From Basidiobolus meristosporus CBS 931.73 (Eukaryota; Fungi; Basidiobolomycota): DNA of 64,000 nt. The number at the start of each line of letters is the position of its first letter. The first letter of the stretch is position 1. The position numbers and the translations under genes are program-made. Shown here one piece after another: positions 435 to 55,239 of this stretch. Location of the stretch: positions 124,001 through 188,000 of the forward strand of contig MCFE01000006.1 of NCBI GenBank assembly GCA_002104905.1. The letters are read 5' to 3'. A model generated the notes under the pieces. The model saw nothing but the letters and a program-made list of their open reading frames with translations. It had not been told where the DNA came from and did no database searches.

Positions 435-2647
435 ATGGCAACAAACAGCTCGGAAAGTTCTCCTCAGAGCGGGACTTCGTCAACTTTTATTAAGCAGCTT
501 GATAGTAAAATCAAAGCATACCGTCAGGAATTGGAAGCAGTCAAGGAATGCAACCAGTTTCAAAAAGATATCTCGAAGATAAAAAGCGGCGATACACCAA
601 TGAGTATGTTGAAGTTATTATAGTGTTTTCTTGACTCATTTCCTAAAGCGCTCGTTTGCTTGTAGATCGCCGCGCATCGGCAAGTGCACTATTAAAGCAC
701 TGTGAAAACCTTACAGCGAACGACACTCAGACAACTCGTCCAATAGGGGCTGTAAGGAGATCCTCTCTGTCAAAGCCCGGCAGGATCTTAGAACATCAAC
801 CGCGGAAGTATTCAATCGAGAGTCAAATCATGGAACCATGTCCTGAGCCCGAAGATGCCGAATACATCGATCCGATTTATCTTCAGCCATGCAATGAGTT
901 TACAGAGCAACATGATGATGATGATGATGATTTCGACAATGAAAGTCTGTGCAACTCTATCCAGTACTCGGAGCACACTCACATACTAGATGTTGAACCC
1001 CCGGCCTTCTCGGTATTCGGCGATGAAAGTGTCTATGAAGCATCCCTTGCTGATTCCACGGTGGCCCGCCGAAAGTTTCATGATGGCCATCTATTGAACA
1101 AAGGCTACGACCATGTAAGATACGGGCTGAAGAATTATGAAGATACGATCTATGAGAATGATTATCTAGATAGAACCTATCTGCCCATACAGTCGTCTGA
1201 TGCTTCTAAATATCGAACTACTCTGCAAAAAAACAACTATTCTCTCCAGAGATCGGAGCCCAAATCTTTCACTACACTTTCAAATGATGAACCCAACGAC
1301 ATCGGCCTTTTTCAAGACGATGGCGATTCTGTTTCTTCTCGTCGCTCATCCGCTCATTACGATGCTAGCTGCCAACGCTTACGTAGAGTTGAATCCGACT
1401 ATCTCGGTAGACACACCTATTATGATACCGCAAAGGGCCATGGTTATGATGGCGCTTGTATCCGCGACGAACGTAAAAAACCCGATTCAGATTTTAGAGA
1501 TTTGTATAGCATAGACAATTATAAGGAACGAGATTACACCAGATTCGATAACAATTCGTCGAGCCAGTCTTACAGTTTGCGTGATGATGTTTCATCAAGG
1601 GAAGGCTCTGTCGATACTTCGGTTCGTTACTCACCATGCCTCGAGGAGCATCCTCTGGGTCGAAGGTCCTCGCTAAATACACCAATGCCAAGCTCTCCCA
1701 ATCCACGATATCAGCACGGTCGACATGCATTGTTTGATCGATATGATCGGGACATACTTCGCCGTTCACGATCGAATATATCGGAGATACTCTTGAACTC
1801 AGCCCGGTCACCAATCACTTCGCCACGTGAGAATGGATCTCGTATTTCTCCAATGCTACCGGAAGCAAAACGAATTCCTCGAGCCCATTCCCCGTCTGTT
1901 GCTTCCTCACATTCTGTGCGAAACCTAATACCCGAAAGGACCAACAGAAGAAATCGCTACACAATTTCGAATCCTGGAGATCTCCGTTCTGAACCTAGGG
2001 GTGATTTTCGACCATCCTCTCGTTTATCTATGGGAACTAGCTCTGCACATCCAACATTCTCGGATACTGCTTCTCAGAGCACCAGTGGAGACTTTCGGTC
2101 CCGTAAATTGAATGAAGTCAAATTCGAGATCTTTCGGGCAGTACATCGAGTGAAATTGGCATTGGATGCTCTTGCTGAAGACTCCAGAGCCCACTCAATC
2201 AATACTGAAGTACAAGGCATACAGGATCTGAACGAAATGGCCTTGCAGACTATGATTGAGCAATTCGAGCACGTCCATGAAATGCTCGGAGAAGGTGAGG
2301 GATCTGTTGGAGCTCGAAGACCTATATCTCCACTTTCTGACGAGTCATATGGCAAATTAATTCCTAACGATACCAAAAAATTTGGAATTACAGAAGATAC
2401 AAATTATGGCCGGCAGAGCGTATCCGAGGAGATGAACTCTTCGGGATATGCAAAATCCAATGCATCATCGCCTAATTTGTATAGCCATCGTCCCAGCTAT
2501 AGCTCAAGGCTTGATCGTAACACCTATGTTGAGCCGCCTCTATCTCCCAGCCCTTCCCAAATCTCCAAATGGCAGAGTTTAATAGAAGATTCAAAAACCC
2601 CTGGCTTGCTAGCCAACCGACTTCGTAGTACTACTTTTGATAGGTAA
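435..2647 (+). CDS. Hypothetical Ser/Arg/Asp-rich, largely disordered protein (~716 aa, 2 exons)
   Basis: ATG at 435 (MATNSSESSPQ...). A GTATGT...TGTAG intron at 604-665 joins ORF 435-623 in phase to the 663-aa ORF 656-2647. No recognisable domain. Confidence 0.7.
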
Positions 2648-5600
2648 ACATCTTCATCACGTTATGTTAGTTATTCTATATATACATATATATACAATGA
2701 TACTATATTGTTGCTCAAAGAAAACGCCATTTCTTTTTGCTTAATCTTTTCAAACTCCCCGTTTGAAAGAGGCGTACCTGTAATTATTCCATTCGCTATT
2801 GCAAACCATATTCAAACCAGCTTTTTTGTTTATACCTTACATTCTGTTTGAGAATTCTAGGAAACTGCTTCACTAAGATACATTGGCCTTCATATATCGC
2901 TTTCCTCATTCTCTATGAGGAGAGGGGGGGATCAACCTCCTACAATGAAACAGTATCTCTTTTGAATTCATGTGCTTTTGTATCCTAGAAATTGCTTTAT
3001 TACCAGATAAACTATTGCAATGACTGTCCAGCTCATTCAATATACTACCCCTTGGTCAGCTCACCACCTCTGCTCGAAGCAAAGAAGCGGAGTTTGGGGT
3101 ATCAACTTTGTGTATGGGCAACTCGTTTCAGGATGCCACTCCACGGTCATTGAGTATTTAGTAAGTATCTCGTCCTCGTCGCCAATCATGTGTTGAAGCC
3201 GAAAGGCCTATTCCAAATCACCAACGCCACCAGATATTTCTCTCTTACCAAACATAGATATATATATATATGTGGCAACTGTAGTTTATGCAATACGATT
3301 ATTAGCACAATCCCAATTACTACGCAATTGGTTTGTAATCTTCTGATATAAACGCATGTGATATATAATTCTGACCTATTTCGTAGGATGTAAGCAATAA
3401 ATCTAGAACGGTACGAAGCCGAACATTACAAATATTATCTTGGTGGAAAGAACTTGCTAAAAATGGCATTATTACAATGCAGTATATAGTGCGGGATCTA
3501 CTGGCAAAACAAGCATACTCACAGTAGATCCAAATGTACACCATGCCTACCTACAGCTCATTACCCAATACGCTAGACACGTTCTAATCAACGAACAACA
3601 ACGCGCGGTTAATCTTAGCCAACAGAGATATCTTCCAGTCACATGCGAATTGACTAGGTGAGTCATCATAATTAACCTTTCATTCAGCCCGTAGGGACTG
3701 AAGAAACATCTATTGATCTTTGAGCACCACAAGAGAATGTGTTCAAGTCGCTGTACTACGTTAATCATCAATAGGCGAATTCTACGAGCAATTTGAAGCA
3801 TAAGAAACCCAAATAGATTCATAGCACATTTCTCCAGCTCCAAGTTATACATATCAAGTTTAAGATACATTCATATGATATGAAAGCAAATATATCTACT
3901 GATCTGGGAAATATAATCTGTAAATTCTAATGCGCGACAGTTTCTATTATACTACGTATGCCTGATAACGTCTTCTCCGTAAAATCCTACTTTCAGGAAA
4001 TCTTGACCCCATGTTGGGCGGGAATAATCCTTAACTGGTCTTTATTGGAGGTAGATACAATAACTACTTCATCAACTCGGGTGAGGGAAGTATGAGATCA
4101 TTTGTGATAACCATCTGAATGTACAAATTGTGATCTGATACAAACAATATTCAGAACGAATCAATCAGCCTGGTTTGTGATGCGAATCAGGAGTAGGTAT
4201 CAATCACGCAGTAGCGGTCGTTCAATATCTTGTGTGTAGATTATTCATATCTATGAAGTAATTTCATTTGTCCAGTGCGAACATAGTATCTGATGTGTGG
4301 GAGTATTTGATCGGTTCTCTGTGAACACCAAAATTGTGGTTTTCGACCCTCCAAATTTGTGGTGATTGCTGTGCAACTGATACGCTTTTCATCCACCATA
4401 TGGCATCTCTTGTAATCCATATACCTAGCCTTCACCCAAACTCTCCGCTCTTCTCAACATTGCCTCCCACTATCACTCGTCACACCACCCAATTTCTAAA
4501 GTAGTGGTGAGCTTCGAACCACGCCGTGAGAATATTCACCTGCTTTCAACGTATAGCCCTTCAGGAGTATACAACTTATTTGCACATGAATATCATGATA
4601 AATCCACCCACTTGATAGGTCGTTGTCGGGCGCATTTGCTTATCCCTTCAGGCTTTATACGTGGTCGTGATTGATTTAGTCATATTATCAGAAGAGCAGT
4701 CTAATTTCAAAGACTAATCCATTGTGTCGCAAGACCTAGGCTTGAGCTGTTCCCAGGAAAATGATTTCAACCAGTGACATTTGTTAGTGGACTCCTAATT
4801 TGTGCGGTCTAGAAGTGGTTTCCAGAAATTGTAACGGGCCGCATTTTTGGTGAATTGTATTTTTTGGCTTTAGATCGTCGATTAGTGAGGACGAAGCTTT
4901 ACGAGTGCCCCCATATAGTGACGTAAATGGAAATAGTACCCAAATAGCCTTACATCTCGCCAAATGATTGTGATGTCATTCAGAATGGGCATACTTGCTC
5001 AGATATCGTGGCTATCGACGTGGCATAACGTAATACTATACTCTATTCGGAATTAAAGGAGCCTGGTGAGCGTAAAATACCTCACTAGATGATATCTTCA
5101 AAATTATGCCATTAGGAGGGTTGGTGAATGGCTTAATTTGGATGCATGATTATCTTTAGGCCAAGTTGGCATGATAAGGGTTAGGGTCTCATACTAATCA
5201 TGGATCAACGAATGAATGTCCATAGAGTCATCATGATCATCAGACCATATTACAGTCTACAGCAGCAATTAAGCTTTTCCTCATTATTAAGGTTTCGATG
5301 GAAGGAAATATCTCGATCATATCTCATCTAACAGGACCAAGTTATCAGAGTCGGGCCTACGGCAGAATGAAGGAGCTAAGGTCGATTGCATCTGCGGAAG
5401 AATTCTGAAGTAATGTCTAAAAGTGGACTCACCCTCACCAATGCCACATACTGTTCGTAATGAGGCAGTGACACGATTTCCGATTATGGCCTTATATCAC
5501 AGCTCCATGATTGAAGTCATGTTTTAAAGGCCATTTAGGTCGCCGCACCACCACATTTTGGGAACATTGCTTATTGTTTCTAGTATAAATTAATTAAGAT

Positions 5601-9706: not shown

Positions 9707-12700
9707 ATGACTTCAGCTATACTAGATCCAGCATTTGTTGGTTCAGGGCGTAGTACAGAGTTCTTTGAGTTTCTTCGTTGTCTAAATGATGCCACGGGAA
9801 AGGAGGTACTGCTGGGGAACTCGTGACTCTCCTATACCAAGACTAACCCGCTCTTTGTACCTAGGAAGAGGCTCAGGGTGTCAAAGCAGAAATAGCTAGA
9901 TTAAAGCAAAGATTTCAGTCTCCAGGCCAGTTATCTCAGGTTCGAGCCCACTTTACTTCTTAGATGATGCTAGGTCTAACCATCAATTCAAGGCCAAATT
10001 GGCAGAGTGTGTTGTCAGCTTATTGTATTGCGAAATGCTGGGATATAAAGTGGAGTTCGGTTATATTCACGCGATAATACTTGCTCAAAGTGCAAAAAAT
10101 TTAAAGGAAAAGCGCATTGGTACGACAAATGTGTTGGCTCTTTATCGAAAACATCTGCTAAATAGGTCCGACCTGCCAGGCTACTTGGTTTCATCGCTTT
10201 TGTTAAACAAAGATCACGAACTTTCTATCATGCTTATGAATTCGATACAGCAGGTGCTCATGAATTCCTCTCAATCGCACTTCATAGAAATGCTGACTCG
10301 TGCCTTGTATAGGATTTAAAAAGTCCCAATCCGTTGGTTATATGCTGTGCCCTGGATACACTTCGTCACCTGGTGAACTCGGAAACCTTTCCTATTTTTT
10401 CGCAAACGTTAGGGGCTTTGTTGATGCACAACAGGTAGTGAGCATCCATTCTACATCAAAAGGCTTCACTAAAAAGTAAACACCTGTGTAGCCCTTTTGT
10501 TCGTAAGAAAGCAGTGACAGTATTACACAGGGTATTCAACTTGGACGCCAGCCTGCTAACGACACAATTCGAAAAGCTGCAAAATTTACTGGAAGATGGC
10601 GACATCGGAGTTCGTGAGACTGCGCTATCCTTTGTCGTCGATATAGTTGCAGTAATGCCATTTTCTTGAATTGAGAGTATTCAGTGATACGTTACTAATC
10701 GTAGATGCCTTGATCTGGCATGTAGAGAAATAAGGAGTATTATCACCTATTTAGCCTTTCGATACTCAACACACTTGAAGTGATCGTTGACATTAAATTG
10801 GGGAAAGTTCACGATTACCACGGTATAACCGCACCGTGGATTCAGATCAAATGCCTTAGAATCCTGGGATATATTGGCAACAGTGATCCAAAGTAGCCGT
10901 CCGCGTCAGATCTATTCCAACGTGTATACACTTATTCCGTTTTGTTTGCAGGCTCAGCGAAAGGACTCTCGACATTATCCTTAAAACCTTACGTAAAGCT
11001 GTTAAAGGGATCGATGCCGCTTATGGTACCATTCCAATCACAAACATCGGTTGAAACTACAGGCTAACCTGATTTTGTGTTTCTTAGCAATCATTCTTGA
11101 GGCCTTCAAGTCATTGACCAGACTTCAAATTGAATTGCCTCCTAGATATCGCGCTTTCTTCCACGATATTATCAGCAGATTCACTGATTCCACTAATAAC
11201 AACCTCAAATACAACGGGTTGCTACTTCTAATGAATATGGTTCATTTTGATCAGGGTGGTACTACAAAATACCAAGAGTTCATTTTCGAATGTCTTGAAT
11301 CTTCTGATGACACACTTAAGCAGACGGTATCTTTTCTAGAGCGGCTACCACTCGCTTCCAGAGCTGACAATTCTTACTATACCAGGCCATTGATCTTTTA
11401 TATACAACGAGTGACAATGGAAACATCGAACGAATTACCATCGAAATACTGAAGCATCTTTGCTCAAGTACTGACTCGTTCCGACAGCGACAATTAACGA
11501 ACTGCATTCTAGATATCGGAGAAAAATATCCTTGAACACTACAGGAATTGTTGATTCTGTCTCGAACCCATTAACAGCCTCCTTAACTCTTGTGTAAGCA
11601 TGGAATGGATAAATTCTGGTATATTGACACTCTGGTGGCCGTACTTCAGTTCAATGCCGAAATGGAACGAGCTCTACCTGAGATGGTGATTCAGATGTTT
11701 ACAAAACGTACACTAGCCTTTCCGGTTTGCTCGTCGAAGTGGTTTTAATCGAAATATTTTGATGACAGACCGACCGAGCCTCGAAGATGCTTTCGTATCG
11801 CAACTGCTTGAGCAGCTTGCAAATGTTGCCAATCAGGACGTGGTTTTATCTTCTAGCTTGATCCGAGTGATCGCATGGGTACACTTCTCGGCCGTAACAA
11901 CCCACCTCAGTTTGGCACTTACTTTGGCAATGCAACAATAGGCTTTTGGTGAATGGTTTCTGTTGGCTTCGGATCAAGCCTCAATCATACAACAGCTGTT
12001 TGAGCTACTGAAAAAATCATTGGGTATGTTCATTGTCTCTGCAACGCACCAACACAATCACCTTGGCTAACCGATCAATCGTAGACTCAGTTACCCAGGT
12101 GTGCATTCATAATGCGCTGACTAAGATTCTGAGCCAAACAGAAGTTGTACCTGATAGTTTCATCGATGAACTGGACAATCTGAAGCAGAACCAAAAATAT
12201 CCGTATAATTGGGTCAGTTCAATCATTGTTTACAGTTAGCATGATTGAAAGGATATTGAACGCAGCTTGACGCTAGATTTGCAATGAGTTGGACCTACTT
12301 TGTACCAAACCGAAACTACTACACGATGCATTATGTTCGGATGATGGCCAAATAGACATCAAGCAAATCCAGGTAACTAACAACTCGCGGGATTACGCAA
12401 GTGAAAATACTGATGAAAAGCTTTAGATCGATGAACATCTCTCGTTTCTTGATGAATTCGTCGCCGAAGCAATTGCTGATGGAGCGCCGTCCTATGACTC
12501 CGCTAAATGTGGCTCATGGCTTAAAATACCAGGTGACGCTGAATGTTGTGTACAGTTTCATTCGTCCATTGATCTTACCTTTATGGCTAGACGCGAAGAA
12601 TAGCTCAATCAAATATCATGCCTACGAGCAGCCTGAATTTTCCGACTTGAGAGACCGCGATTTCAAGTACGGCATTAATTCGCCTACCTTGAACAGCCTT

Positions 12701-16660: not shown

Positions 16661-17995
16661 CTTATACACACCTCAGTAAATATATGGTTTATACTAGGTT
16701 TACCAGTTACGAGTCAAACAAACAGAACGACAGGGGTTTCTTTAGGGGCCTTGTATTGCTAAACTAGGAACGGTCGTTAGGTTAACTACTAGGGTTCGTA
16801 GGGGTATTTCTTTTGGTTAGAAAGTTGAACCCCGGTTGGTAAATAAAGTTAATTTGCCCACGTACTTACTTCTGAATACAGGGGAGGTAAGCTTCTTACT
16901 TTTGAACAATAAACTTGGGTGAGGGTTCGGTTAAAGGACGACCAGGATTGCGCATGGGTTCCTGAAAATATATCCCTCCCTTCATTTCGATCCTTTTTTT
17001 TCATTGTGATCACCAGTGAAGTTAGATCTCCTACCCTTAACACGTGATATTGTGACAATGAATGGTGGAGATACCAGCGGCGGAGAGGATTAATTGCGAA
17101 TGGAATCGTTCCATTCATGAGCCAATGGGCGTATGTGTGGAGTCCCTTGAAAGAAGCAAGAAGTGGTACATGATAAGATCTGGATATGTGTAGGATCCAA
17201 TTTTCCAGTATCTACATATCATGCTTAGTTTCAAGTAAATTCGATGAATGTCGCTCCACAAGTCATAGGAGATACAGGGCCATTGAAATGGGGGGGAGGA
17301 GGGGGTTGGCTCTGATGTACTGGAGAGCAGTGTTATTCGTAGGTGATGAATGCCGGAACATACAGTAACTTCATTTTGGCCAGTACCTCTTTTAGAGAGC
17401 TACGGAGCTAAAGCTACAGTCTCTTTCTTTTGGGTGCTCATCTTTATTAATAGTATGTACCAAGAAGTAAATGGAAGATTGACCGAGTATTACACTTGAT
17501 ACTTGTTACTTACTTGAAATGACGGGTCAAGCCGAAACGTGATAAAAGGATAAACTAGAACTAAGAAGTAATTGAAAAGATATTCTATCTATGCACATAG
17601 AGCATGGGGAAACAGTTGGAAGAAAAGCTAACTAAAACAAGGACGGTGAACGTTTTTAAGTTTTTTTGTTTTGTACAATCTGAAGTAAAACAAATATGAA
17701 GTTAAGGACCCGAGAGAAAATATTGGGGAGGGCATCAAACGGTGTTGTTGAAATAAAGGAAATTGAAGATGACTGCTTGGCCAAAATTTCAACGACAGTC
17801 AAGTATGAACAGCACATACGATGAAGCTGAGATAGGCAACCAAAAAATCTTCACCCTTAGCTTCTAAACAGGGAGAAAGGGAATGTCATAAAATTCGGAA
17901 TGGTGAATGTAAAACAAAGGCTAATAGAGAGAAAATATTAACTCACGAATCAGTGGAGATTTCTTTACCCTTTGATCTGAGCCGGAATGGTAAGT

Positions 17996-25297: not shown

Positions 25298-26974
25298 ATG
25301 CAGGTACTCTAGTATAACTTGCGGTATCTACACAACAACCGAAGATATTAACCTTTACAAAAACAACGTCTAGCTTGATATCACACCTGCCTACGAAGAG
25401 GTAAAAGAGTTAATTTCCTCGGGAAAAGGAAACACTGTGCCTATATATCACGCACTGTCGGCCGATTTGTCCACCCCAGTTTCCACTTATTTGAAGCTGA
25501 GAAAGGATGGCGTCCACTCATTTTTGTTAGAGTCGGTTACCGGCGGAGAGAAAATCGGGCGGTACTCCTTTATTAGTTTTGGTGAGTACTGCATTTCAGC
25601 TTAGGAAAAGCCTTCGCTTTGCTAAGATGTTTATTTGAAGACGCTCAGAAGGTTATCAAAACCGGCGATAACGAGAATATCCAAGGAGACCCCTTGGTTG
25701 CTGTTGAGCACGAGCTCAAAGACGTCAAATTCGTCCCTGTACCTGGGCTCCCTTCTTTCACAGGTAACTCGGCTAACGTGGCACACTGATATTTGCGGTT
25801 ACTGATGGTTGACATATTAGGTGGCGCCATCGGATACATCTCATACGACTGCATAAAGTATTTCGAGCCCCGCACGGCCAGAGACATGGAGGACACACTT
25901 GGAATCCCCGAGAGCATCTTCCTGTTCTGCGATACAATGATTATTTTCGATCATCTTCACCATTTAATCAAGATCGTTAGTCATATCAAGTGTGACCCTG
26001 ATCATCTCGATTCGTTAGAAAGCAAATATAGCAAGGCTAGCGCCGAGATTATGGAGGTTGTGAAGCGATTAAATGAGGACAACATCCCGTTGCCCGAGCA
26101 GCCACCAATCAAATTGGGACAGGATTATACCTCGAATGTTGGTCAAGAGGGATATGAATATTTTGTAAAAAACCTGAAGGAGCACATCGTCAAGGGCGAT
26201 ATCATCCAAGCGGTACCGTCGCAAAGGCTGGCTCGCCCCACTTCTCTACACCCATTCAATGCATATAGACATCTTCGCACTGTTAATCCGGCACCTTACA
26301 TGTTTTACTTCGACTTCCACGATTTCCACGTGGTTGGTGCCTCTCCGGAGATGCTCGTCAAGGTTGAAAATAACATCGTTTATACTCATCCCATTGCCGG
26401 CACTCGTAAGCGTGGAAAGACTCCGGAGGAGGATGACGCTTTGGCTGCTGACCTTCTAGCAGATGAGAAGGAGGTTGCTGAGCATGTCATGCTTGTTGAT
26501 CTTGGTCGTAATGATGTCAACAGAGTGTGCCGCCCAGAGACTGTGAAAGTAGACTCGCTGATGCATATCGAGCGCTACAGCCATGTAATGCACATTGTTA
26601 GTAATGTCAGTGGTGAGCTTCGTGAAGATCAAACACCATTTGACGCATTTAGATCCATTTTCCCAGCTGGTACTGTTTCAGGTGCACCAAAAATCCGTGC
26701 GATTGAGTTGGTCAACGAGTTGGAGAAGGAGAAGCGCGGTATTTACGCCGGTGCCGTAGGCCACTTCAATTACTCTGGAGATTTGGATACGTGCATTTCC
26801 ATTCGCACCATGGTGTTCAAGGATGGTGTAGCCTATTTGCAAGCAGGAGCAGGGATTGTCTACGATTCCGTGCCCGAGAAGGAGTATGAGGAAACAATGA
26901 ACAAATTGATGTCCAACATGACTGCGATTACTCAAGCCGAGAAACATCATTATAATTTACAACAGCAAGCCTAA
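25298..26974 (+). CDS. TRP2: Anthranilate synthase component I
   Basis: [74 protein letters not shown] and [11 protein letters not shown] motifs. Three 5' introns. Confidence 0.95.
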
Positions 26975-37626: not shown

Positions 37627-37975
37627 TGTTGTAAAAATTCGTATTTCCACCTAAATATTCACCTAACTTAGTCACTTAGATCATTACCTTCAAATCCTAG
37701 AAAATACTGACCAAATTCCTTGTTGGGATTTACTTTGAGAATTTTCATGTTCTGGGTACCTGGTATTTTGGTGAAAATATTCTAAGTTGTCCAAACAGCC
37801 CCAAACTTTGCACACATGTTCTTGGGACCTTCCTTAACCTATTCTACGAGTTTGTAATGCCAAGACCAGGTAAAAGTATAAATACTACTTTTACATTCAA
37901 TAAATCATTAAGTGAAAACCACATAATCTACTTGTTCTCCCAATCACTTCCAGTATCTCCAAGACTCTTACAACA
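37627..37975 (+). repeat. 5' LTR (family A)
   Basis: TGTTGTAAAA...TTACAACA; TATAAA at 37877. Eight substitutions plus a 48-bp inversion relative to the 3' LTR. Confidence 0.95.
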
Positions 37976-37989
37976 GGTTATGAGCCCTG
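37976..37989 (+). promoter_or_regulatory. Primer-binding site complementary to the anticodon arm of initiator tRNA-Met
   Basis: GGTTATGAGCCCTG directly after the LTR is the reverse complement of CAGGGCUCAUAACC of tRNAiMet (sequence recalled from yeast). It contains the gag ATG. Confidence 0.85.
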
Positions 37990-40900
37990 AGCTGTCACTC
38001 TCTGCAATGTCTACTACTGCTATTACTGGAATTTTTCCCTCTGCTGAAAAGTTGGATGGATCTAACTACCAAGTGTGGAAGGTGAAGATGAAGATGCTGC
38101 TACAAGAAAGAGGCCTTTGGGATATTGTCATGGGAGAAGAATGCCCTCCTAAAAACATGGGAGAGGAAGCCTTAAAGTACCAGAAGAAAGAACAAAGTGC
38201 CTTTAACTGCATTTGCCTTAATGTCAAGGACAAATTGCTAATTCAATGCTCAAGAGCAAAAACGGCAAAAAATGCCTGGAAAGCATTGGAAGACACCTAC
38301 CAGTCATGTTCAGCTGCCAAGAAAATGTATCTGAGAAGAAAATTCTTTACTACAAAGATGCTGCCAGGAGAAGAAATGAAAAATCTAATTAACAGAATTA
38401 CCCTGCTGGTAGATGAGATGGAATCTGTGGGCGTACCAACTACTGATGAGGATGTGATAGTTACCATCCTGAATAGCCTGACAGACAAGTTTCAGGGCCT
38501 TGTATCAGCCCTAGAGTCCAGAACTGAAGATTTGACCTTAAATTACGTATATGGAAGGCTCCTGGATGAAGAATTAAGAAAATCAAGCGCCAATAAGAAG
38601 GAAGAAGAAAATGCTTTAATAAGCAATGATAACCAACAAAGGAGGTATCCAAGACCCTACAAAGGCAACAGCAACCTATTTTGCAACTACTGCAAAAGGA
38701 AAGGACACACATCAGACCGGTGTTTCAAAAAGAGAGATTATCAGCAAAAGAAGCCTGAATATGGAAATGCTGCAACAACTGAAGATAGACTATTCATATC
38801 TGCACTAAATATGACCACAAACAAGGATTCTCAGACATGGTATATTGACTCTGGAGCTTCTCAACACTTTACACACCAAAAAGAACTTTTTACCCAATAT
38901 CAAGAAATTCCAATTAAGAAGGTTTTCATGGGCAACGATAGAACACTTGATGCAGTGGGAGAAGGAACTATCCAAGTAAACCTTAGAAGTAGTGAAGGAA
39001 GCCATACACTGACCTTTAAAGAAGTACTCTATGTACCAGAAATAGCCAAGAACCTACTCTCTGTAAGCAAGGCCACAGCAGAAGGACTCAGTTTCAGTTT
39101 TGACAATTCTGGATGCAGGATCACTGATCAAAATGGTGCTCATATTGCTTCGGGCATCAGAGATCAGAACCTATACAAGTTGACTTATATTCCATCATAT
39201 CTGGAAGCCAATATAAGTAACTTAAATGAAGAAACACCAATGCTTTGGCACAGGAGATTTGGGCACATCAATTTTGATTATTTGCGCAAAATGATCAAAG
39301 ATCAGCTAATTTCTGGAGTAAAAATTGATCCCCCAGCTAATTTGGAGCACTGTGAAGCCTGCATATATGGGAAACAAGCCAGACAACCGTTCAAGAGCTC
39401 TGGGTTAATCAAAACTAAGAAAAAATTAGATCTAATTCACTCAGATCTGTGTGGACCTATGCAAAATTTATCCTTAGGCGGGATGAAGTATTTAATCACT
39501 TTTATTGATGATTATACAAGATACACATGGGTCTACTTCATGGAGAGAAAGGAAGAAGCTCTGTCTAAGTTCAGGGAGTTTAAAGCCATGGTGGAGAAAG
39601 AAACTGGTGAAAAAATCAAGAAAATACGCTCTGACAATGGTGGAGAATATACCTCAAAACTCTTCATCCACTTCTGCAAAATTCATGGGATAAAGCAAGA
39701 GACTACTGTACCATACTCCCCACAGCAAAATGGAGTAGCAGAACAAGCTAACAGATCAATAATTGATATGGCAAGATCTATGATCCATGATCAAAAATTA
39801 TCCTATGATTTTTGGGTGGAATCAGTTGCCACTGCTGTATATCTTAAAAATAGGAGTTATAACAGAATACTTCGTGATTCTACTCCATTTGAAGCATGGT
39901 ATGGATACAGACCAAGTGCAGAACATCTAAGAATATTTGGGTGTACAGCATATGCCAAAAAACTGGCCGGAAATCAGTCAAAATTTGAGCCAAAAAGTGT
40001 AAAATGCATATTTTTGGGCTACTGCAATAAGAGTAAGGCATACAGACTCTACAATACCAAAGCAAAGAAGCTGATCAAGTCCAGGGATGTGTTGTTTGAT
40101 GAAAATTCAAAATGTTCACAAAAAATGACATCAGATGATGACAAAAATTTGATCTCAAGTCCACCAATTGTCAGGATTGAATCAGAGCAAAACAATGAAA
40201 ATTTTTTCACTCCAGAGGACTCTACAACCGTGGTTCAGCCAGAATCAGTGCCCAGGAATATCCCAGAAGTGATCATTCCAGTATTAAATGCCCGGAGATC
40301 CAATCGGACAAGAAATAGCCCAAATTACTATATCAATGAGGGTACAAACTTAGCCTATGCCTATTCAGTCCATATTGATGAACCCCAGACTGTAAAAGAG
40401 GCCCTAAATAGCCCTCAGACAAAGTTTTGGAGATCTGCAATGACTGAGGAATATCAGGCCCTGATGGAAAATCAAACTTGGGACTTAGTCAAATTACCAA
40501 TCAACCAAAAATCAATTGGATGCAGATGGGTCTTTAAAACAAAATACAAGGCTGATGGTACAATTGAAAGATACAAAGCAAGACTTGTAGCCAAAGGATA
40601 CTCTCAAACAAAAGGACTTGACTATACTGAGACCTTTGCACTGGTAGCCAAGTTTAATTCCATCAGATTAATATTGGCTATTGCAGCCAAATATAAGTTT
40701 TTTATTCATCAAATGGATGTAAAAACTGCATTTTTGAATGGAGAACTTGATGAGGACGTGTATATGGACCAGCCTGATGGGTTTGTTGACCAAAATGACC
40801 CCCATTTGGTCTGCAAGCTTAAAAAGTCACTATATGGTCTCAAACAATCACCAAGAGCCTGGAATTGCAAGATAGATTCTTATTTGGAATATTTGAGTTT

Positions 40901-41951
40901 CAAAAGGAGTAATGCTGACTATAGTATATACTATAAGCCAGATAGAGCAAATCCAGTTCTATTAGCTCTATATGTGGATGATCTTATTATAGCCGCCAAT
41001 AACCTAGAAACATTGGAAGAGACTAAATCCAGCCTATCTAAGGAGTTCAAGATGTCCGATCTAGGAGAACTTAGTTACTACTTAGGGATTAAGTTCTCCA
41101 TAGACAGAAGTACCCAGACAATTACCCTAAGCCAATCCAAGTATATTCAAGATATACTAAAGAAGTACAAAATGGAAGACTGTAAACCGGCAGCTACCCC
41201 AATGGAGACAAACCTTAACTTGGTCAAAACTCAACCATATCAAGAGAGCTTGGTGCCATCTGAAAGCCCTGACTTTCCTTATCAATCTATGGTCGGCAGT
41301 CTGATGTATATCATGCTTGGAACTCGTCCAGATATCTCATATTCAGTGGGAGTTGTCAGCCAACATAATCAGAGCTATGGATCTGATCATATTGCAGCAG
41401 TTAAGCGGATTTTTAGATACCTAAAAGGAACTGCTGATATCTGCTTAAGATACACTTATAAGGACTCAGAACAAGATCTTGTGGGATACTCTGATGCAGA
41501 TTGGGGACAAAATTTGGAAGACAGAAGATCCACCACAGGATATACCTTTCTTTACTGTAAAGGAGCAATTTCATGGAACTCAAGAAAGCAACCAACCGTA
41601 GCACTTTCTACTACAGAGGCAGAGTATATGGCAGCTTGTGAAGCTACAAAAGAAGCAATGTGGCTAAGAAAGCTCTTTACAGATTTAGGCCTATGTCAAA
41701 AAACGCCTATTACTTTATTTCAAGATAATCAAGGATGTATACAATTAGGTAGAAATCCAACTTTTCATGCTAGAACCAAGCACATAGATATTAGACATCA
41801 TTTCATATGTGAAGCTATAGAGAGTAACTTAGTTAGCTTAGTTTACTGTCCTACAGATGAAATGATTGCAGACATATTTAGCAAACCATTAGCTAGAGAC
41901 AAGTTTGAATATCTTAGGTCAAAATTAGGACTAGTCAGTATGAACATTTAG
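37980..41951 (+). CDS. Copia gag-pol polyprotein (1323 aa)
   Basis: Zinc knuckle CNYCKRKGHTSDRC; protease WYIDSGASQH; integrase HRRFGH...CEAC, HSDLCGP, IRSDNGGEY; RT QMDVKTAFLNG, LYGLKQ, LYVDDL; RNase H GYSDADW, DNQG, KHIDIRHH, ADIFSK. Confidence 0.93.
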   Translation: MSPELSLSAMSTTAITGIFPSAEKLDGSNYQVWKVKMKMLLQERGLWDIVMGEECPPKNMGEEALKYQKKEQSAFNCICLNVKDKLLIQCSRAKTAKNAWKALEDTYQSCSAAKKMYLRRKFFTTKMLPGEEMKNLINRITLLVDEMESVGVPTTDEDVIVTILNSLTDKFQGLVSALESRTEDLTLNYVYGRLLDEELRKSSANKKEEENALISNDNQQRRYPRPYKGNSNLFCNYCKRKGHTSDRCFKKRDYQQKKPEYGNAATTEDRLFISALNMTTNKDSQTWYIDSGASQHFTHQKELFTQYQEIPIKKVFMGNDRTLDAVGEGTIQVNLRSSEGSHTLTFKEVLYVPEIAKNLLSVSKATAEGLSFSFDNSGCRITDQNGAHIASGIRDQNLYKLTYIPSYLEANISNLNEETPMLWHRRFGHINFDYLRKMIKDQLISGVKIDPPANLEHCEACIYGKQARQPFKSSGLIKTKKKLDLIHSDLCGPMQNLSLGGMKYLITFIDDYTRYTWVYFMERKEEALSKFREFKAMVEKETGEKIKKIRSDNGGEYTSKLFIHFCKIHGIKQETTVPYSPQQNGVAEQANRSIIDMARSMIHDQKLSYDFWVESVATAVYLKNRSYNRILRDSTPFEAWYGYRPSAEHLRIFGCTAYAKKLAGNQSKFEPKSVKCIFLGYCNKSKAYRLYNTKAKKLIKSRDVLFDENSKCSQKMTSDDDKNLISSPPIVRIESEQNNENFFTPEDSTTVVQPESVPRNIPEVIIPVLNARRSNRTRNSPNYYINEGTNLAYAYSVHIDEPQTVKEALNSPQTKFWRSAMTEEYQALMENQTWDLVKLPINQKSIGCRWVFKTKYKADGTIERYKARLVAKGYSQTKGLDYTETFALVAKFNSIRLILAIAAKYKFFIHQMDVKTAFLNGELDEDVYMDQPDGFVDQNDPHLVCKLKKSLYGLKQSPRAWNCKIDSYLEYLSFKRSNADYSIYYKPDRANPVLLALYVDDLIIAANNLETLEETKSSLSKEFKMSDLGELSYYLGIKFSIDRSTQTITLSQSKYIQDILKKYKMEDCKPAATPMETNLNLVKTQPYQESLVPSESPDFPYQSMVGSLMYIMLGTRPDISYSVGVVSQHNQSYGSDHIAAVKRIFRYLKGTADICLRYTYKDSEQDLVGYSDADWGQNLEDRRSTTGYTFLYCKGAISWNSRKQPTVALSTTEAEYMAACEATKEAMWLRKLFTDLGLCQKTPITLFQDNQGCIQLGRNPTFHARTKHIDIRHHFICEAIESNLVSLVYCPTDEMIADIFSKPLARDKFEYLRSKLGLVSMNI

Positions 41952-43818: not shown

Positions 43819-45785
43819 AAAGATGCTGCCAGCAGAAGAAATTAAAAATATAATTACCAGAATTACCCTGATGGTGGATGAGATGGAATCTGTGGGTGTA
43901 CCAACTTCTGATGAGGATGCAATAGTAACCATCCTGAATGGCCTGATAGACAGGTTTCAGGGCACTGATATCAGCCCTAGAGCTAGAACTGAAGATTTGA
44001 CAATAAATTATGCTCAAGGAAGGCTCCTGGATGAAGAATTAGCAAAATCAAGTGGCAAAAGAAGGAAGAAGAAAATGCTTTAATAAGCAATGATCACCAA
44101 CAAAGGAGATACCCAAGAGCTTTCAGAGGTAATAGCAACCAGTGTTGTAACTACTGCAAAAGGAAAGGACACACATCAGACCGGTGTTTGAAAAACAGAG
44201 ATAGTCAGCAGAAAAAGCCTGAATACAGAAATGCTGCAACAACTGAAAACAGACTATTCATATCTGCACTAAATATGACCACAAACAAGGACTTACAGAT
44301 GTGGTATATTGACTCTAGAGCTTCTCAATACTTTACACACCAAAAAGAACCTTTTACTCAACATCAAGAAATTCCAAATAAGGAGGTTTTCATGGGTGAC
44401 AATAGAACACTTGATGCAGTGGGAGAAGGAACTATCCAAGTAAACCTTAGAAGCAGCAAAGGAATCCATACAATGACTATTAATGAAGTACACCATGTAC
44501 CAGAAATGACCAAGAACCTACTATCTGTAAGCAAGGCCACTGTAGAAGGACTCAGTTTTAGCTTTGACAGTTCTGAATGCAGGATCACTGATCAGAATGG
44601 TCCCCACATTGCTTTGGGTATCAGAGATCAGACTCTATACAAGTTGACTTATATTCCATCATATCTGGAAGCCAATATTAGTAACCTAGGTGAAGAAACA
44701 CCAATGCTTTGGCACAGGAGATTTAGAAACATGAATTTTGATTATTTGTGCAAAATGATCAAAGATCAGCAAATTTCTGGAGTAAAAGTTGATCCCACAG
44801 CCAATCTGAAGCTCTCTGAAGCCTGCATCAATGGGAAACAAGCTATACAACTGTTCAAGAGCTCTGAGTTGATCAAAACTAAGAAAAAATTAGATCTAAC
44901 TCACTCAGATCTGTGTGGACCTATGCAAAATTTATCCTTAGGTGGGATGAAGTATTTGATCACTTTTACTGATGGTTATACAAGATACACATGGGCCTAC
45001 TTCATGGAGAGAAAGGAAGAAGCTCTGTCTAGGTTCAGGGAGCTTAAAGCTATGGTGGAGAGACAAACTGGTGAAAAAATCAAGAAAATACGCTCTGATA
45101 ATTGTGGAGAATATACCTCAAAACTCTTCACCCACTTCTGCAAAATTCATGGGATAATTCAAGAGACTACTGTACCATACTCCCCACAGCAAAATGGAGA
45201 AGCAGAATGTGCAAACAGATCCATAACTGATATTGCAAGATTGATGATCCATGATCAAAAATAATCCTACAATTTTTGGGTGGAATCAGTTGCCTCAGCT
45301 GTGTACCTTAAAAATAGGGGTTATAGCAGAATGCTTTGTATTCTACTCCATTTGAAGACTAGCATGAATACAGACCAAGTGCAGAACATCTAAGAACATT
45401 TGGGTGTACAGCATATACCAAGAAACAGCATGGAAATCAGTCAAAATCTGAGCCAAAAAGTGTGAAATGGATATTTTTAGGCTACTCCATTGAGAGTAAA
45501 GCAAACAGAAAAAAAATTAATTGGATGCAGATGGGTCTTTAAGACAAAGTATAAGGTTGACGGTACAATTGAAAGATACAAAGTAAGGCTTGTGGCTAAA
45601 GGATACTCTCAAATAAAAGGACTTGACAATATTGAGACCTTTGCACCAGTAGCCAAGTTGAACTTGATCAGATTAAGGTTGGCTATTGCAGCCAAATATA
45701 AGTTTTCTATACATCAAATGAATGTAAAAACTGCATTTTTGAGTGGAGAACTTGATGATGACATGTATATGGACTAGCCTGATGG

Positions 45786-48381: not shown

Positions 48382-49480
48382 CCCAAGAATTCTGTAAAGC
48401 TTTGGTGACTTCAGGAGTGCTTAGAAGCTCAAGTATATTTTCTGGCTTTCACTTAGTTATTCACTGAAATCAGAAGTAGTATATAGACTCATACGTAGTC
48501 TTGGCAAACAACCATGTAGAGTATGCTTAGGAAGATCCCAAGAACATGTGTGCAGGTTGGGCTGTTTGGACTACTTTGAAGAATTTCATGTTCTAGGCAC
48601 CTAGCATTTGATGAAAGTATTCTTAAGAACTATGGACAAGAAATTTGGTCAGAATTCTCCAAGAATCTTAGGTAATGATGCAAGTCACTAGATTGGGTGA
48701 ATTTTTAGGTGCAATTAAAAGACTTACAGCACTCCCATGCAACTAAATATTCATATCCATGAGTCTTAAATGTCATCTGAGAGGCCTGTATTTGACTTGG
48801 GCCAATACTTCAGTATATATATCTGCAATTACTTCATCTATAGTACAGTAAGTTAGGCAAACTGACTTATTCCCTATAGCATCAGATATGAAATGATGTC
48901 CAATATTTACATGTTTAGCTCTAGCATGAAATGCAGGATTTCCACCTAATTGTATACAACTATAAATATCCTGAAATACAGTAGTGGGGGCAATTAAGAA
49001 AATCTGAAGTCTTTGAACAGCTTTCTTAGCCATATTACTTCTTTATTAGCCTCTCAAGTGGTCATGTAATCTGCTGGGGTAGTGGAATGTGCTACAGTTG
49101 GTTGCTTTCCTGAGTTTTATGAGATTGCTTCTCATAAGTAAGTATAAGAATTTCCTATGGTGGATCTGGTGTCTTCTAAGTTCTGTACCCAATCAGATTC
49201 AGAGTATCTCACATGTTCCTGTTCTAAATCTTGAATGGTATACCTTAAGCAAGTATTAGTAGGTCCATTTACATATCTAAAAACCTGCTTAACTGCTGCA
49301 ACTTGAGCAGATACATAGTTATGGCTATGCTGGCTGACAGTTGATATTGATTATGAGCCATCTTGATGTGCTCTTAGCATGTTATACATTAAGCTGCAGA
49401 CCCTGTATTGAGAAGGGAAGTATGGGCTTTCAGATAACCCCAAGCACTAATTATTTTGCTGAGTTTTGACCAAGATAAGG
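48382..49480 (-). mobile_element. Degenerate Copia family-A 3' fragment (RT end, RNase H, 3' LTR at about 48382-48731)
   Basis: ORF 48773-49033 (CIQLGGNPAFHARAKHVNIGHHFI...ADIYT). The reverse complement of 48382-48731 aligns to LTR A, with a PPT remnant next to it. Confidence 0.85.
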
Positions 49481-50593
49481 TGTGTGCTTGTTAGGATACA
49501 TCAAGAAAAACAATCAGGAAAAGGTGGGCACATTGCAATCATAGCATTGGCTGTATTCCAGCTTTCCCAAAAGTGTCAACTCTTGGTACCCAAGGTGTTG
49601 GCTCCCTATGAGAAGTAATTTAATTCCACAGGTGGGCACAATCTAGATCAGCCATCAGGATCCCATAATAAGGCTATTGTAATGTCAGCAGCTTGGAATT
49701 CTTGACTCTCTTCACAGTCCTATGGCAGGATTGTGACAGTACTTTGCTGTTTTTACTGTCAAACTAATCAATAAACTTGACAGTGCATCTACAGTGCTTA
49801 AGTTGGCCTTGAATGGTATATAGGAAGTCTTTATGTGGCCTACATCTATTTAAGTGGACCTAGCCAGCCAATAGGTGCAGCTACATTATATGCCAAGTAT
49901 CTCGGAGATGTTTAGATGGACTTGAGGCAGACCTTAGCAGGCAGTAGCACTGCAGTGCAGTGGCCTACAGCTAGTCCTGTATAGTGCTACTGTACCAATT
50001 TACTAAATGGCTTTTCATCTTCCTACATCCCCTAGTGTCATTTGTGTAAGCCATGTTGGAATCAAGCTACCTCATTTGCCTACCCAATACTACTACAGAT
50101 ATTCCACATCCAGTCAGATCAAAGAAAACTATGGCCTCCTGCCTACCAACCTCTACATATGCACAGACCTACTTCAAGGTTGCATGTTTTGTGCAACCCC
50201 ACCTTAGCTTACTTAGCTGATAGCCCATACATTGGGGCTGCTTAGCTTCCTGATGCCAATGGCAGGGGTACCTCCATGTGCACATCTATGCTTGGTATTT
50301 TCCAACTCTATATGGGTCTCCTCCATATGACAACTCATCACATCTATGCAGGACTTAAAGGTAATATCCCTGATGAGACTGGGATATGGCAATACTGGTT
50401 AATTAACTTGTCTTTCTATCTTCACGCAAATCCACTCCATAGGAAGCCTCCAATACTTGCTATATACAAAGCAAGAGGAGGCAGGGAATGGATACAGTAG
50501 CCACAGAGATATATGTGCTCAGCAGTATGCTGGCAGTATGGTTGCTCAAATTCTGTCACAAACTCATTGCAAAAAAGCTGCAGATGTTCAAGC

Positions 50594-52250
50594 CCCAAGA
50601 AAAATAATTTTGAAGATCCTGATGAAAGGCTTTTGCAAAATTGAAATCCCATGACTAAGAGGTATTGATCCCATCAGTACACCATGCAAAGACCATTGAA
50701 AGAATTGCACCCCAGATCTCACAAATAACTTAGTCAAAAAAATACATCATAAAAATATATTAGTAGCTTATAATTGGTTCTTTGCCAATTTTCTCACTTT
50801 CTGATCCTGGAGACAGAATCACCTTCTATGTGTGTGTATGTTAATTGGTAGTTACCTCTTATTCATACTTTTTACTTCCCAACTCAACCAATTTTCTTAC
50901 ATTTCATGCCTACAAATTGATTTATTTCTGTCTAAACTTCAGTTGTACCTCAATTGCCAATTGGACTGGCCTACACAAGTCCCTATATACAATACTGATC
51001 TTAAGCTTAACCCCTCATTCAACAAGTAACTCTATTAAGATCCATCATTCAATAAGTATTTCAGCTGTAATGTCCTTTCTCCAAGATGTTGGCAGGAACC
51101 CTACAGCTTTATGCCATTTTTTATTTACCAGTTACCATATGTCCTGGCTTTCAGCTGGCACTGCAAGGTTCAGCACTTCATGAGCCAGTCTTGGCTATAA
51201 ATCTTCTCAATAATTAAGTGAACTTTCTTGAGCACTGCACTTGAAGAAGAGCTGCAGCTTCTTGGTATGCCTTTTAATGTTTCATAATCCCAATTTAGGC
51301 ATTGTAATAGTTGTTTGAGTTACTGATGTTGTTGCTTTGTCTGTCAGTGTAAGCTCCACTCCATATACCACAGAGGACATGGAGTCATTAATAGACAAAT
51401 TGCCTTTCTCTACAGGGTCATCTACTTCACTAGAGTGTAGCTCAACTAGCAGATTCCAACTCTTTTGAGAACAGCTGTTGTCTTATTGGTAAATTTTCAT
51501 GGCTATTATGTAACTCAGTCTGTTCTGGGCTAGTGGCATTAATTGGTGAGAACAGCAGCTTTTTCTCATACTTCCCTGTCTCTGGCTTGGATAGACTGTT
51601 ATCTCCTCACCTTTACCATTGTCACTGCAAAGTCTGTCACTAATATTTTAACCAAATGATTCATGTATTGAACCACATTTCTTCTTGATAAATGCTGCAC
51701 TGGAGTATTCATCTTTACCTGCTTGCCCCTTACCAGCACTCTCCTGACAACCTGATGTTTCTTTGCCACTTGTTCTCAATGCTCAACCCTGCTTGTCATG
51801 GGCCCCTAAAAAAGCCATGGTTTTTTATCACTGCCCAGTGATTTGCTACTACTTTAGCTGAGTGCTTCATGCATTAAACTACATTCTTCCCATGATAAAT
51901 GCTGCACTGTTACACTGGTGCATCTATTTTGGCCTGATTGTCCCTTACCAGCACTCTTCTGGCTGCCTGATGTTTCTTTGCTGCTTATTGAAAGTCTTGA
52001 GCACTGTATGTGGCAAGCTCTTGAGGAAGCTGCTGGTTTTTAGCTGTGGCACTGTTATTCCTTTGCATCTTATAGTTTCTGCTATTCTTGAGATGAATTC
52101 TTAGCATAGCAATTCTGACCTAAAACTTATTTGCTTGCTTGAGTCCAGGATAATGCTCATGGAACAGATCAATTGAATTCTGCTTGGCCTTGAGCTCCTG
52201 ATAGCTGCACAGTATGCCAACAGTGAAGTGATGTCATGCTAGACTTCTGA
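50594..52250 (-). repeat. Unclassified repeat family Y, copy 2
   Basis: Homologous to copies 1, 3 and 4; contains an internal ~210-bp duplication (about 51690-51780 vs 51890-51990). Ends approximate. Confidence 0.65.
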
Positions 52251-52793
52251 TTTCCTCCTGAACATCAGCCTACTTTTCATCATTTCACTTAATGGCGTAA
52301 TAGATCTCCAATGCCTTATGATATGCAGGCTTGGGTGTAAAGATCAAGGTCTCTCCCTCCCATGCTGTAGTAGGCTTCTCTGTGGGCTTTATCTTTGGGT
52401 ACTGCTGTTGTGCTTCAAAGACTGCACAGTATTCCTCTGCAATTACATTGGGAAATGGCTCAATCTCTTGGCTGTGACATTAAGCCACTAGGGTTCCTTC
52501 CTTGAAGCCTATATACTGTGTTCTCTAGTTGAGTATTGATTGCACTACACAGACCATCTGCTCTTGTGGTCTCTGGACAATTTCCAGATTTCTTTTGGCC
52601 ATTGCATGTATCCTCGTATCCACCACACCTAATTGCCTCATTAGTACTTTGGTATGAGTAGACAGCATGTTTGTTAATATTGGTGGTAGTGATTTTACAA
52701 TGGTCATTTGCTGATCTTCCACTGGAGGTATTGTGTTTGCTACAGTCTCATCTACCTGAGCATTAGGATAAGCCTGCACCTCTGCAAGGACTT

Positions 52794-53200
52794 TCAGTGC
52801 CTACTTGACTGAGAGCCTGAGCAGTTGGAGAGTATTACTGTAAATGTATGACTGTAATATTTGTTGGACTGCATTAGCTTCTTTAGACAGGGTATTGCTG
52901 GAATATATCTGGAGTATGAACAATGTTTTCCCTCAATGGTGGTGGATTCCTGACAATTTGGACACATTGCCATAGTGGCATTTTTGGATTTGAATGCCAT
53001 GCAACTGTCAACACATGTTGGAATCAGGACAGTCTCTAGGTCATTTGTTGCCAGCCACATGATAGTTGTCCACTTGTACCATGTACATGATAAGTTGGAT
53101 CCTGGAATGATTTTGGCAAGAAGTAGTAATAAATCCTCAAGGCCCCCATTACTGATATTAGTACAAATGCTCTACTATTCTAGCCACAACATTACATCAT
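52794..53200 (-). mobile_element. CACTA/EnSpm transposase relic (N-terminal part)
   Basis: Minus-strand peptide ISNGGLEDLLLLLAKIIPGSNL...IPTCVDSCMAF...CPNCQE...RYIPAIPCLKKLM matches the CACTA transposase N-terminal Cys motif (C-x-N/D-x-C...CPxC...YxP). Confidence 0.7.
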
Positions 53201-54048
53201 TCACCAGTAGATATATTACTGGGCTCACTTGGCTCTATAAAGTATCCTTGGCATTTGTTTCAGTGGGTGTTGTCTCATTGCATATTGGGATTTGACCAGG
53301 CTCATGGGTTGAACTGTTGTTAGGAAAGATGGGACCAAAATCCATCAGTGAGCCTTCTGTGTCAGAGCTATCACTCTGCATGCCATATTCAGAAGGATGA
53401 GGTGAGCCTAAAGGTATCACAAACTCACTTGACCCAGTTTGTGCAAGGTGACAAGTATGGCCATTTTAGAAGTATTAAGTTGCTGGCAAGATATTGCTGG
53501 TACAGTAGTAACTGATAAATTGTCAAATATAACATGTGTGGCAAAACACTGTCAGCAATACTTGTAATGCTTCCTATGCTATCTGAATGCTTCATGGCTG
53601 AGAGGCTTGCTATAAGAGCTACATGATCTTTTTCTCTTTTTGGCTCATACAAGTGCATTAATGAGGCACTTTGGTGCTTTAGCTCATAGAATAGATGTAA
53701 TGGTCAGAGAAAAGAGGACACAGTCCAGAAACATGATGAGCAGATAATATGTGTAGAGCAAATAGTATCCCAAGTAGTGAGTGCAGTATCTTTGCTGCAA
53801 AGAAGGAACTCAAGTAGCTCAATGCTATAGCTAAGAGTTGGGCCATTTCCAAATTTAACAATAGAGCAACACTGTTCAGTATTTAAAGCTCAACAACAGT
53901 GCCTGGAGATAATGCCCACAAAAAAACATACCACAGCATTGGAGGAAGAGACTGTGGTGTTTATACCCAGGCCTAAGAGTCAAATGACATTGAAGGTCCA
54001 TAAATCCATTGGGTGAAATGATGCAGAGTACATCAATATTTAAGAGGG

Positions 54049-54631
54049 TGTTGTGGTAGGCTAAACATACCTCCCACAGAAAATTTTATTCATATAGCTA
54101 TTATGTTGTACTTATCCATATAATATCTTATTATTATTATGTCATTCTTCTTTTGCCTATATTATTGGTATAATCTCCATATGATGTTTACCCTGATTAG
54201 TTATTAGCGTTAGTTATACCAGATGTTACTCTGCTTTGTGACCAGTATATGAATCTACATAAGGCAAGTACCCACATCAGTACCTGTGACACATGACCTA
54301 GGTCTGTGCTACCATCCCTTCCATTTCAATACCATATGTGGTATCCTTATGTTGCACAGGTTTCAGACTACAGATCCCTGATTGGTTCGATGTGCTGTTC
54401 CTTTTAAACCTTCCAGGACCTTTTTGGAGTATTATTTAGCTCATAGTAATTTCATCACAGATTCCACTAATGCCTGGAATTTTCTAGAACCTTGTCATTA
54501 GTAATCACTTGGCAATCATATCAAGTATTTAAGGGATGTCAATCCCTCATCAATAAGTCATCCCATCTATGAATAACACTTCTCCCTTATTGATCAGCAG
54601 TTGATCACTGCACCTGCCTTCAACAGTTACA
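54049..54631 (+). repeat. Possible LTR (family D), single copy in this window
   Basis: Starts TGTTG after a purine run (AAGAGGG), ends GTTACA, with TATA-like and AATAA-like motifs inside. No partner LTR or TSD seen. Confidence 0.3.
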
Positions 54632-55239
54632 TCTCAAACCTGCCATCAAGGAGCTTTTCAGGGTAGTGCACAAGACACACAGAGGCCTTTGGAGACACTT
54701 GGAGCACCTAGAAATCTAGAGAAGAGGAACTTTTATAATAGTGACATATTGACAAAGGCACCAGCAGTTTAGACCCAGAGGTTATTGCACCCTTCAGACA
54801 TCTCACACACCTTGAGTTGTGTAGCTTCTCCCAGGAGTACCCCTACACCACCACACCATTAAAAGTCTAGCATGGTATTGCCTAAAGGCAGGTACACCAT
54901 GGGACCATCAGGAGCTCAAGGTCAAGCAGATGATAGTTCCAGGCAAGGAGTAAAGAAACGCTAGGTTGCTGGGGGAGTGCCAGCAAGAGACAAGCAGGCA
55001 AAAATTGAAGTCAGATTGGGTATTTGACGGTAAATATAACAACAAGTAATAACATGTAAATACATTTTTATTTCATATATAATTTAAAAGTTTCTTGTTT
55101 CAAAAATAGTTTTTCAGACTTTTGTTTTAAATTTGGTTTTTAATATTTAAATTTCAATTCTGGTTTTTTAACTTAAACCATATCTTTTGTTAACCTTTAT
55201 AGTTGCCATATAAAAAAAGTTTTTTAAAAAATATTTACA

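Follow-up and report, generated by a model that had tools for sequence, protein, structure and literature searches.

Among fungi, Basidiobolus meristosporus has the highest reported content of minor (U12-type) introns, with 249 (0.554%) in one survey (PMC10639083) and 237 in another (PMC11347168), and its genome holds genes for U11, U12 and U6atac together with a divergent U4atac candidate (PMC11347168). The gene family considered here also has its place in this literature, since mouse Ap4e1 is a minor-intron gene that is listed in U12DB and has been assayed (PMC8848931). As to the ends of minor introns, three AT-AA introns were counted in human, four in mouse and one in Arabidopsis, and switching between AT-AA and AT-AC occurs among orthologues, for instance between human and mouse MSH3 (Sheth 2006, PMC1557818). 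About 4% of conserved minor introns are non-canonical and AT-AA is their commonest terminus in animals and plants (Larue and Roy 2023, PMC10639083), while AT-AN introns are regarded as a single functional 'A-type' class (de Wolf 2021, PMC8280824). An earlier note on the present locus had called AT-AA a rare class: the terminus is indeed uncommon, yet it is well known and already documented (PMC1557818, PMC10639083, PMC8280824). In U12 introns, the branch point is optimally placed 11-13 nt from the 3' splice site (PMC3584512).

We analysed a 64-kb stretch of the B. meristosporus genome, hereafter the window, in which a conserved reading frame is broken within an AP-4 epsilon (AP4E1-like) gene. 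At this point the window reads GAT ATC GGA GAA AA, then ATATCCTTGAACAC...GCCTCCTTAACTCTTGTGTAA, after which the exon resumes with GCATGGAATGGATAAATTCTGGTATATTGACACT. The unspliced reading is blocked by three in-frame stops (TGA 11533-35, TAA 11572 and TAA 11584), the first of which ends the read-through GEKYP, in line with the earlier description of an exon reading DIGEK and then hitting TGA. The donor motif ATATCCTT begins at the first intron base, as in U12 5' splice sites, and the branch motif TCCTTAAC fits the U12 branch consensus over its whole length. From the latter to the last intron base at 11597 the gap is 10 nt, the branch adenosine at 11585 or 11586 lying 12 or 11 nt from the 3' end, and this interval reads CTCTTGTGTAA, with the short distance and the lack of a long polypyrimidine tract that are typical of U12 introns. 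Excision of 11526-11597 joins GAA AA to G CAT, giving E K H followed by GMDKFWYIDT; it restores the conserved reading frame and puts the next donor, the GT at 11708, in frame. The predicted product aligns without gaps to the AP4E proteins of five species. The claims of the earlier note on perfect donor and branch sites, on colinearity with AP-4 epsilon and on the phase of the next intron were therefore all borne out. On motifs, frame and orthologous introns together, 11526-11597 is very probably a genuine U12-type intron of the A-type AT-AN class in the AP-4 epsilon gene (Table 1). Like the documented members of that class, it would combine its ends, here predicted as AT-AA, with full U12 donor and branch consensus.

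Table 1. Features of the AP-4 epsilon gene in the window and introns at the same site in other species (positions refer to the window or, for the other species, to the locus in brackets).
Feature or species	Position	Strand	Intron length	Intron ends	Residues past junction	Basis or remark
Window: AP-4 epsilon (AP4E1-like) gene, modelled part, ATG 9707, 16 exons	9707..12532	+				open adaptin-like exons, orthologue alignment
Window: exon 10, ends LDIGE plus AA (first 2 bases of Lys codon)	11386..11525	+				alignment with orthologue ...LAEK exon
Window: predicted U12-type intron, phase 2	11526..11597	+	72 nt	AT-AA	HGMDKFWYIDT	motifs, frame, orthologous U12 introns
Window: predicted 5' splice site ATATCCTT	11526..11533	+				matches U12 consensus RTATCCTT
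Window: in-frame TGA closing read-through GEKYP	11533..11535	+				direct read of sequence
Window: predicted branch-point sequence TCCTTAAC	11580..11587	+				match to TCCTTRAY
Window: predicted 3' terminal dinucleotide AA	11596..11597	+				frame and 11-residue colinearity with orthologues
Window: exon 11, G completes Lys, then HGMDKFWYIDTLVAVLQFNAEMERALPEMVIQMFTK; GT donor at 11708	11598..11707	+				colinear with orthologues
Calcarisporiella thermophila, Mucoromycota (L006)	1976-2076		101 nt	AT-AC	YAPNRKWCIRT	branch TCCTTAAC; correctly annotated
Diversispora eburnea, Glomeromycota (L005)	2574-2738		165 nt	AT-AC	FYQSSEWFIKT	public model mis-drawn
Crotalus horridus, snake (L004)	11704-12493		790 nt	AT-AC	YAPNNEWFIRT	branch TCCTTAAT 11 nt before end; model mis-drawn
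Dipodomys ordii, rodent (L012)	donor 24455		24,021 nt	AT-AC		model mis-drawn
Limulus polyphemus, horseshoe crab (L007)	49461-54689		5,229 nt	AT-AA	HSSDHKWIIVT	branch TTTCTTTAAC 10 nt before end; exon resumes G CAT
Balamuthia mandrillaris, Amoebozoa (L001)	2423-2508		86 nt	GT-AG	YAPSSEWFLDT	GTAAGC...CCCAG, major-type, same site and phase

The site was compared with AP-4 epsilon loci of Balamuthia, Crotalus, Diversispora, Calcarisporiella, Limulus, Basidiobolus ranarum, Brassica, Amborella, Phytophthora and Dipodomys and of two metagenome contigs. The donor AA|ATATCCTT stands in the Lys codon, at the same codon and phase, in the AP-4 epsilon genes of five other species, so that recognised U12 introns occupy this same position, which is common to three fungal phyla (window included) and three animals. 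In Dipodomys, the 64-kb locus has no RTATCCTT on the gene strand other than this donor. The 11 residues past the junction align gap-free among six species, with W at +7 and T at +11. Compared with the vertebrate AP4E1 minor intron, the window intron sits in the same gene, in the Lys codon of ...AEK|YAP..., in phase 2 and behind the same donor, and both have a TCCTTAAC-type branch site near the 3' end. They differ in that the vertebrate copies are 0.8-24 kb long and end in AC, whereas the window copy is far shorter and ends in AA, and in the codon past the junction, which is His in the window versus Tyr in vertebrate AP4E1. Since codon, phase and donor are shared across fungi and animals, the 11526-11597 intron is, as judged from these alignments, the orthologue of the known vertebrate and arthropod AP4E1 minor intron. 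The Dipodomys result therefore suggests that the minor intron of mouse Ap4e1 is this same intron.

Once the intron is accepted as U12-type, its exact 3' end has to be decided. Moving the junction by one A (11525-11596) yields an identical mRNA, and among 3' ends only 11597 both preserves the frame and leaves the 11 residues colinear with orthologues. Together, these two constraints would demand a 3' end at 11597, and hence AT as the first and AA as the last bases. The best surviving alternative, which we nevertheless regard as improbable, retains the U12 intron with another 3' end, either because base 11597 is truly a C that was misread (AT-AC) or because the AG at 11598 or the AC at 11630 is used. 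Although AC ends the intron in most orthologues and 3' site choice in U12 introns has been reported as error-prone (PMC3584512), use of the AG at 11598 would shift the frame into a stop, while the AC at 11630, albeit in frame, sits 43 nt downstream of the branch motif and would delete HGMDKFWYIDT, the best-conserved residues. A sequencing error at 11597 would leave the junction unchanged, and in Limulus a RefSeq model with a colinear protein ends this very intron in AA.

The last intron base would thus be A in the window; it is A in Limulus and C in most relatives. The intron of the Limulus AP4E1-like gene (models XP_022240770.1 and XP_022240771.1) agrees with that predicted in the window in position, phase and donor, and in both the AT-AA termini are followed by G CAT (Lys-His); it differs in its length of 5.2 kb and in its branch motif, TTTCTTTAAC. 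The AA in the window is most simply read as the outcome of a C-to-A substitution at the final intron position in the Basidiobolus lineage, which would be tolerated because the minor spliceosome locates the 3' site by how far it lies from the branch point. By what is established for minor splicing, the ATATCCTT donor would pair first with U11 and later with U6atac, and U12 would pair with TCCTTAAC and bulge the branch adenosine. The 3' site would then be picked 11-12 nt past the branch, where it falls after AA and not AC, and the product would be GGAGAAAA|GCATGGAA, predicted to code for DIGEK-HGMDKFWYIDT. The documented AT-AA cases are from animals and plants, whereas the window is fungal, and a literature search of limited reach found no description of a fungal AT-AA intron; the window intron would accordingly provide a fungal example of this terminus class. 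We would raise only tentatively, as a rather doubtful proposition, that the combination of AA with G-CAT, seen only in Basidiobolus and Limulus among the copies examined, is ancestral or reflects repeated joint changes of the last intron and first exon bases, and that, if the public Basidiobolus model mis-draws the junction, annotation-based censuses under-count fungal non-canonical minor introns and the window holds the first described fungal AT-AA case.

A further reading is that this gene copy is a pseudogene, or that the intron is largely retained, the motifs being relics of a once-functional U12 intron. This is very unlikely. All 16 modelled exons translate without stops and are conserved, which argues against a pseudogene, and decay would not predict donor and branch motifs that are both perfect. 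The model extends to 12532 and leaves out the C-terminal part beyond that position. The U12 candidate is intron 10; the other introns are GT-AG and 57-74 nt long, save one of 44 nt. The latter, the second intron (9930-9973), is also GT-AG and was placed from the frame alone, as the sole frame-consistent option. Outside the U12 intron, the AP4E1-like gene is otherwise normally built.

Several searches bear on the identity of this gene. Pfam Adaptin_N matches were obtained on four single exons at successive positions of the profile, each scoring under the whole-protein cut-off because the exon pieces are short. In a search of solved structures, exon 10 aligns with residues 388-423 of AP-2 alpha, at an E of only about 0.1 and beside designed-repeat noise, and exon 11 alone gave no match. 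A HMMER search with exon 3 retrieved relatives that are named AP-4 epsilon by their sources and carry the AP4E appendage domain PF14807, and AP4E orthologues align to the window exons in tblastn. The modelled exons thereby join Adaptin_N matches with AP4E-specific similarity, as expected for an AP4E trunk, and on these alignments the gene that carries the candidate intron is an AP-4 epsilon adaptin. The 36-aa exon 11 was not placed by exon-by-exon Smith-Waterman alignment and was placed by direct inspection and by tblastn with Balamuthia exons; a word search with the 148-aa ORF adjoining the intron returned no matches. Word searches with Balamuthia AP4E, and with an alignment in which the window exons formed separate rows, gave no protein from the genome of the window itself; the second result also lacked rows of its own query alignment, so that its blank carries no information. 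The nearest library protein is a partial one from Basidiobolus ranarum, with 95% identity over the query exon and 94% over exon 1. The corresponding B. ranarum contig, which ends short of the intron, is only 69% identical to the window at the DNA level over 1 kb; the window therefore represents another species of the same genus, or a paralogue.

How much weight the motifs can bear was assessed against their chance level. RTATCCTT occurs 10 times in the window versus 5.6 expected, and TCCTTAAC five times versus 2.0, so that either U12 motif taken singly means little. The ordered donor-branch pair at a spacing of 20-500 nt is found once in the window and was seen in 5% of 400 Markov-simulated windows, and this single pair coincides exactly with the break in the conserved reading frame. 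Among junctions, we tested the GT-AG, GC-AG and AT-AC pairings that span the three stops without loss of frame. The earlier statement that nearby GT-AG pairings all hit stops proved slightly too sweeping, as nine GT-AG or GC-AG pairings remain open, but each of these drops at least 31 conserved codons, and only the AT-AA junction spares every conserved residue. It is accordingly scarcely credible that a major-spliceosome GT-AG or GC-AG intron spans the stops and that the U12-like motifs are coincidental: open pairings exist and neither motif is singly rare in the window, but each such pairing deletes 31-78 conserved codons, the donor motif stands at the same codon in six lineages, and even the 5% expectation for the motif pair does not yet count its position.

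Other candidate sites in the window were also considered. The remaining RTATCC[TC]T sites were rejected as U12 donors, being without a branch motif at a workable distance. At 16970-17060 (+), ATATCCCT is followed 65 nt on by CCTTAAC and then by ...GTGAC, with no convincing coding frame on that strand, and this motif pair is probably a chance match. Exon 14 holds AAAAATATCCGT at 12194-12205, which again codes for K-Y-P and resembles a U12 donor inside coding sequence; ATATCCGT at 12197 was rejected as a second U12 donor, given that a splice from this site to the next exon would change the frame and meet a stop. Elsewhere, the window has an ORF of 1364 aa at 37857-41951 (+) and an ORF at 25793-26974 (+) with chorismate-binding and anthranilate synthase component I N-terminal domains (E 2e-95). 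A further ORF at 44188-45264 (+) bears Pol_BBD, gag_pre-integrase and rve (integrase) domains, and the window therefore includes retrotransposon sequence.

Public annotation of this intron in other species is uneven. In several AP4E models, divergence sets in after ...LAEKYP or ...LAGKYP, because AA|ATATCC, when read through, encodes K-Y-P. The intron is missed in the models of Crotalus (KAL7980045.1), Dipodomys (XP_012865411.1) and Diversispora (CAG8450341.1), all of which drop or skip one or more downstream exons. The Crotalus and Dipodomys models continue past the exon end into the donor, giving ...K-Y-P; that of Diversispora breaks otherwise, lacking that stretch and resuming at ...ERETIDNVFK... 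A K-Y-P followed by divergence may thus serve as a practical flag for overlooked AT-AC or AT-AA introns.

The suggestion of the earlier note that the intron may be ancestral is borne out by orthologous loci, since three fungal phyla and three animals all have the ATATCCTT donor in this position and phase. These comparisons place the AP4E1 intron, already of U12 type, in the common ancestor of animals and fungi at the least. Comparison with animal and plant AP4E1 genes, which the note had also proposed, gave opposite answers: position and phase match in Crotalus, Dipodomys and Limulus, whereas Brassica rapa and Amborella have no intron there, one exon spanning AEQFAPSNQWFIQ. Phytophthora cactorum AP-4 epsilon is likewise intronless at the conserved site. 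The position is therefore absent in the two angiosperms and the oomycete examined and is shared with an amoebozoan, Balamuthia. The Balamuthia intron equals that of the window in position and phase and differs in being major-type (GTAAGC...polypyrimidine...CAG), which suggests a U12-to-U2 conversion or the reverse. In the metagenome contigs (L002 and L003), a 453-aa AP4E-like ORF is unbroken across the junction site (...SLAEKFAPSNSWYIQT). This ORF is present in ENA, JGI and Logan assemblies, and one member of its cluster is labelled as a Promethearchaeia MAG protein, which most likely reflects eukaryotic contamination or an intron-poor protist.

For B. meristosporus itself, the suggestion of the earlier note that this organism has a working minor spliceosome matches published work (PMC10639083, PMC11347168); no Rfam match to minor snRNA genes was found within the 64-kb window. 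The published minor-intron set of this species, which depends on annotated gene models, resembles the window intron in that its U12 introns are short and sit in housekeeping genes that are old and rich in introns. The richness of the genus in minor introns, the AP4E1 minor intron and the AT-AA class were all known already, and the window intron is an old and unexceptional case of a known kind. It leaves the picture of minor splicing in fungi unchanged, this having been published already for Basidiobolus. To conclude, the AP4E1 intron joins, as one more well-supported case, the few minor introns that animals and fungi have kept in common; it is at least as old as the opisthokont ancestor, and an amoebozoan has a major-type intron at the corresponding site.
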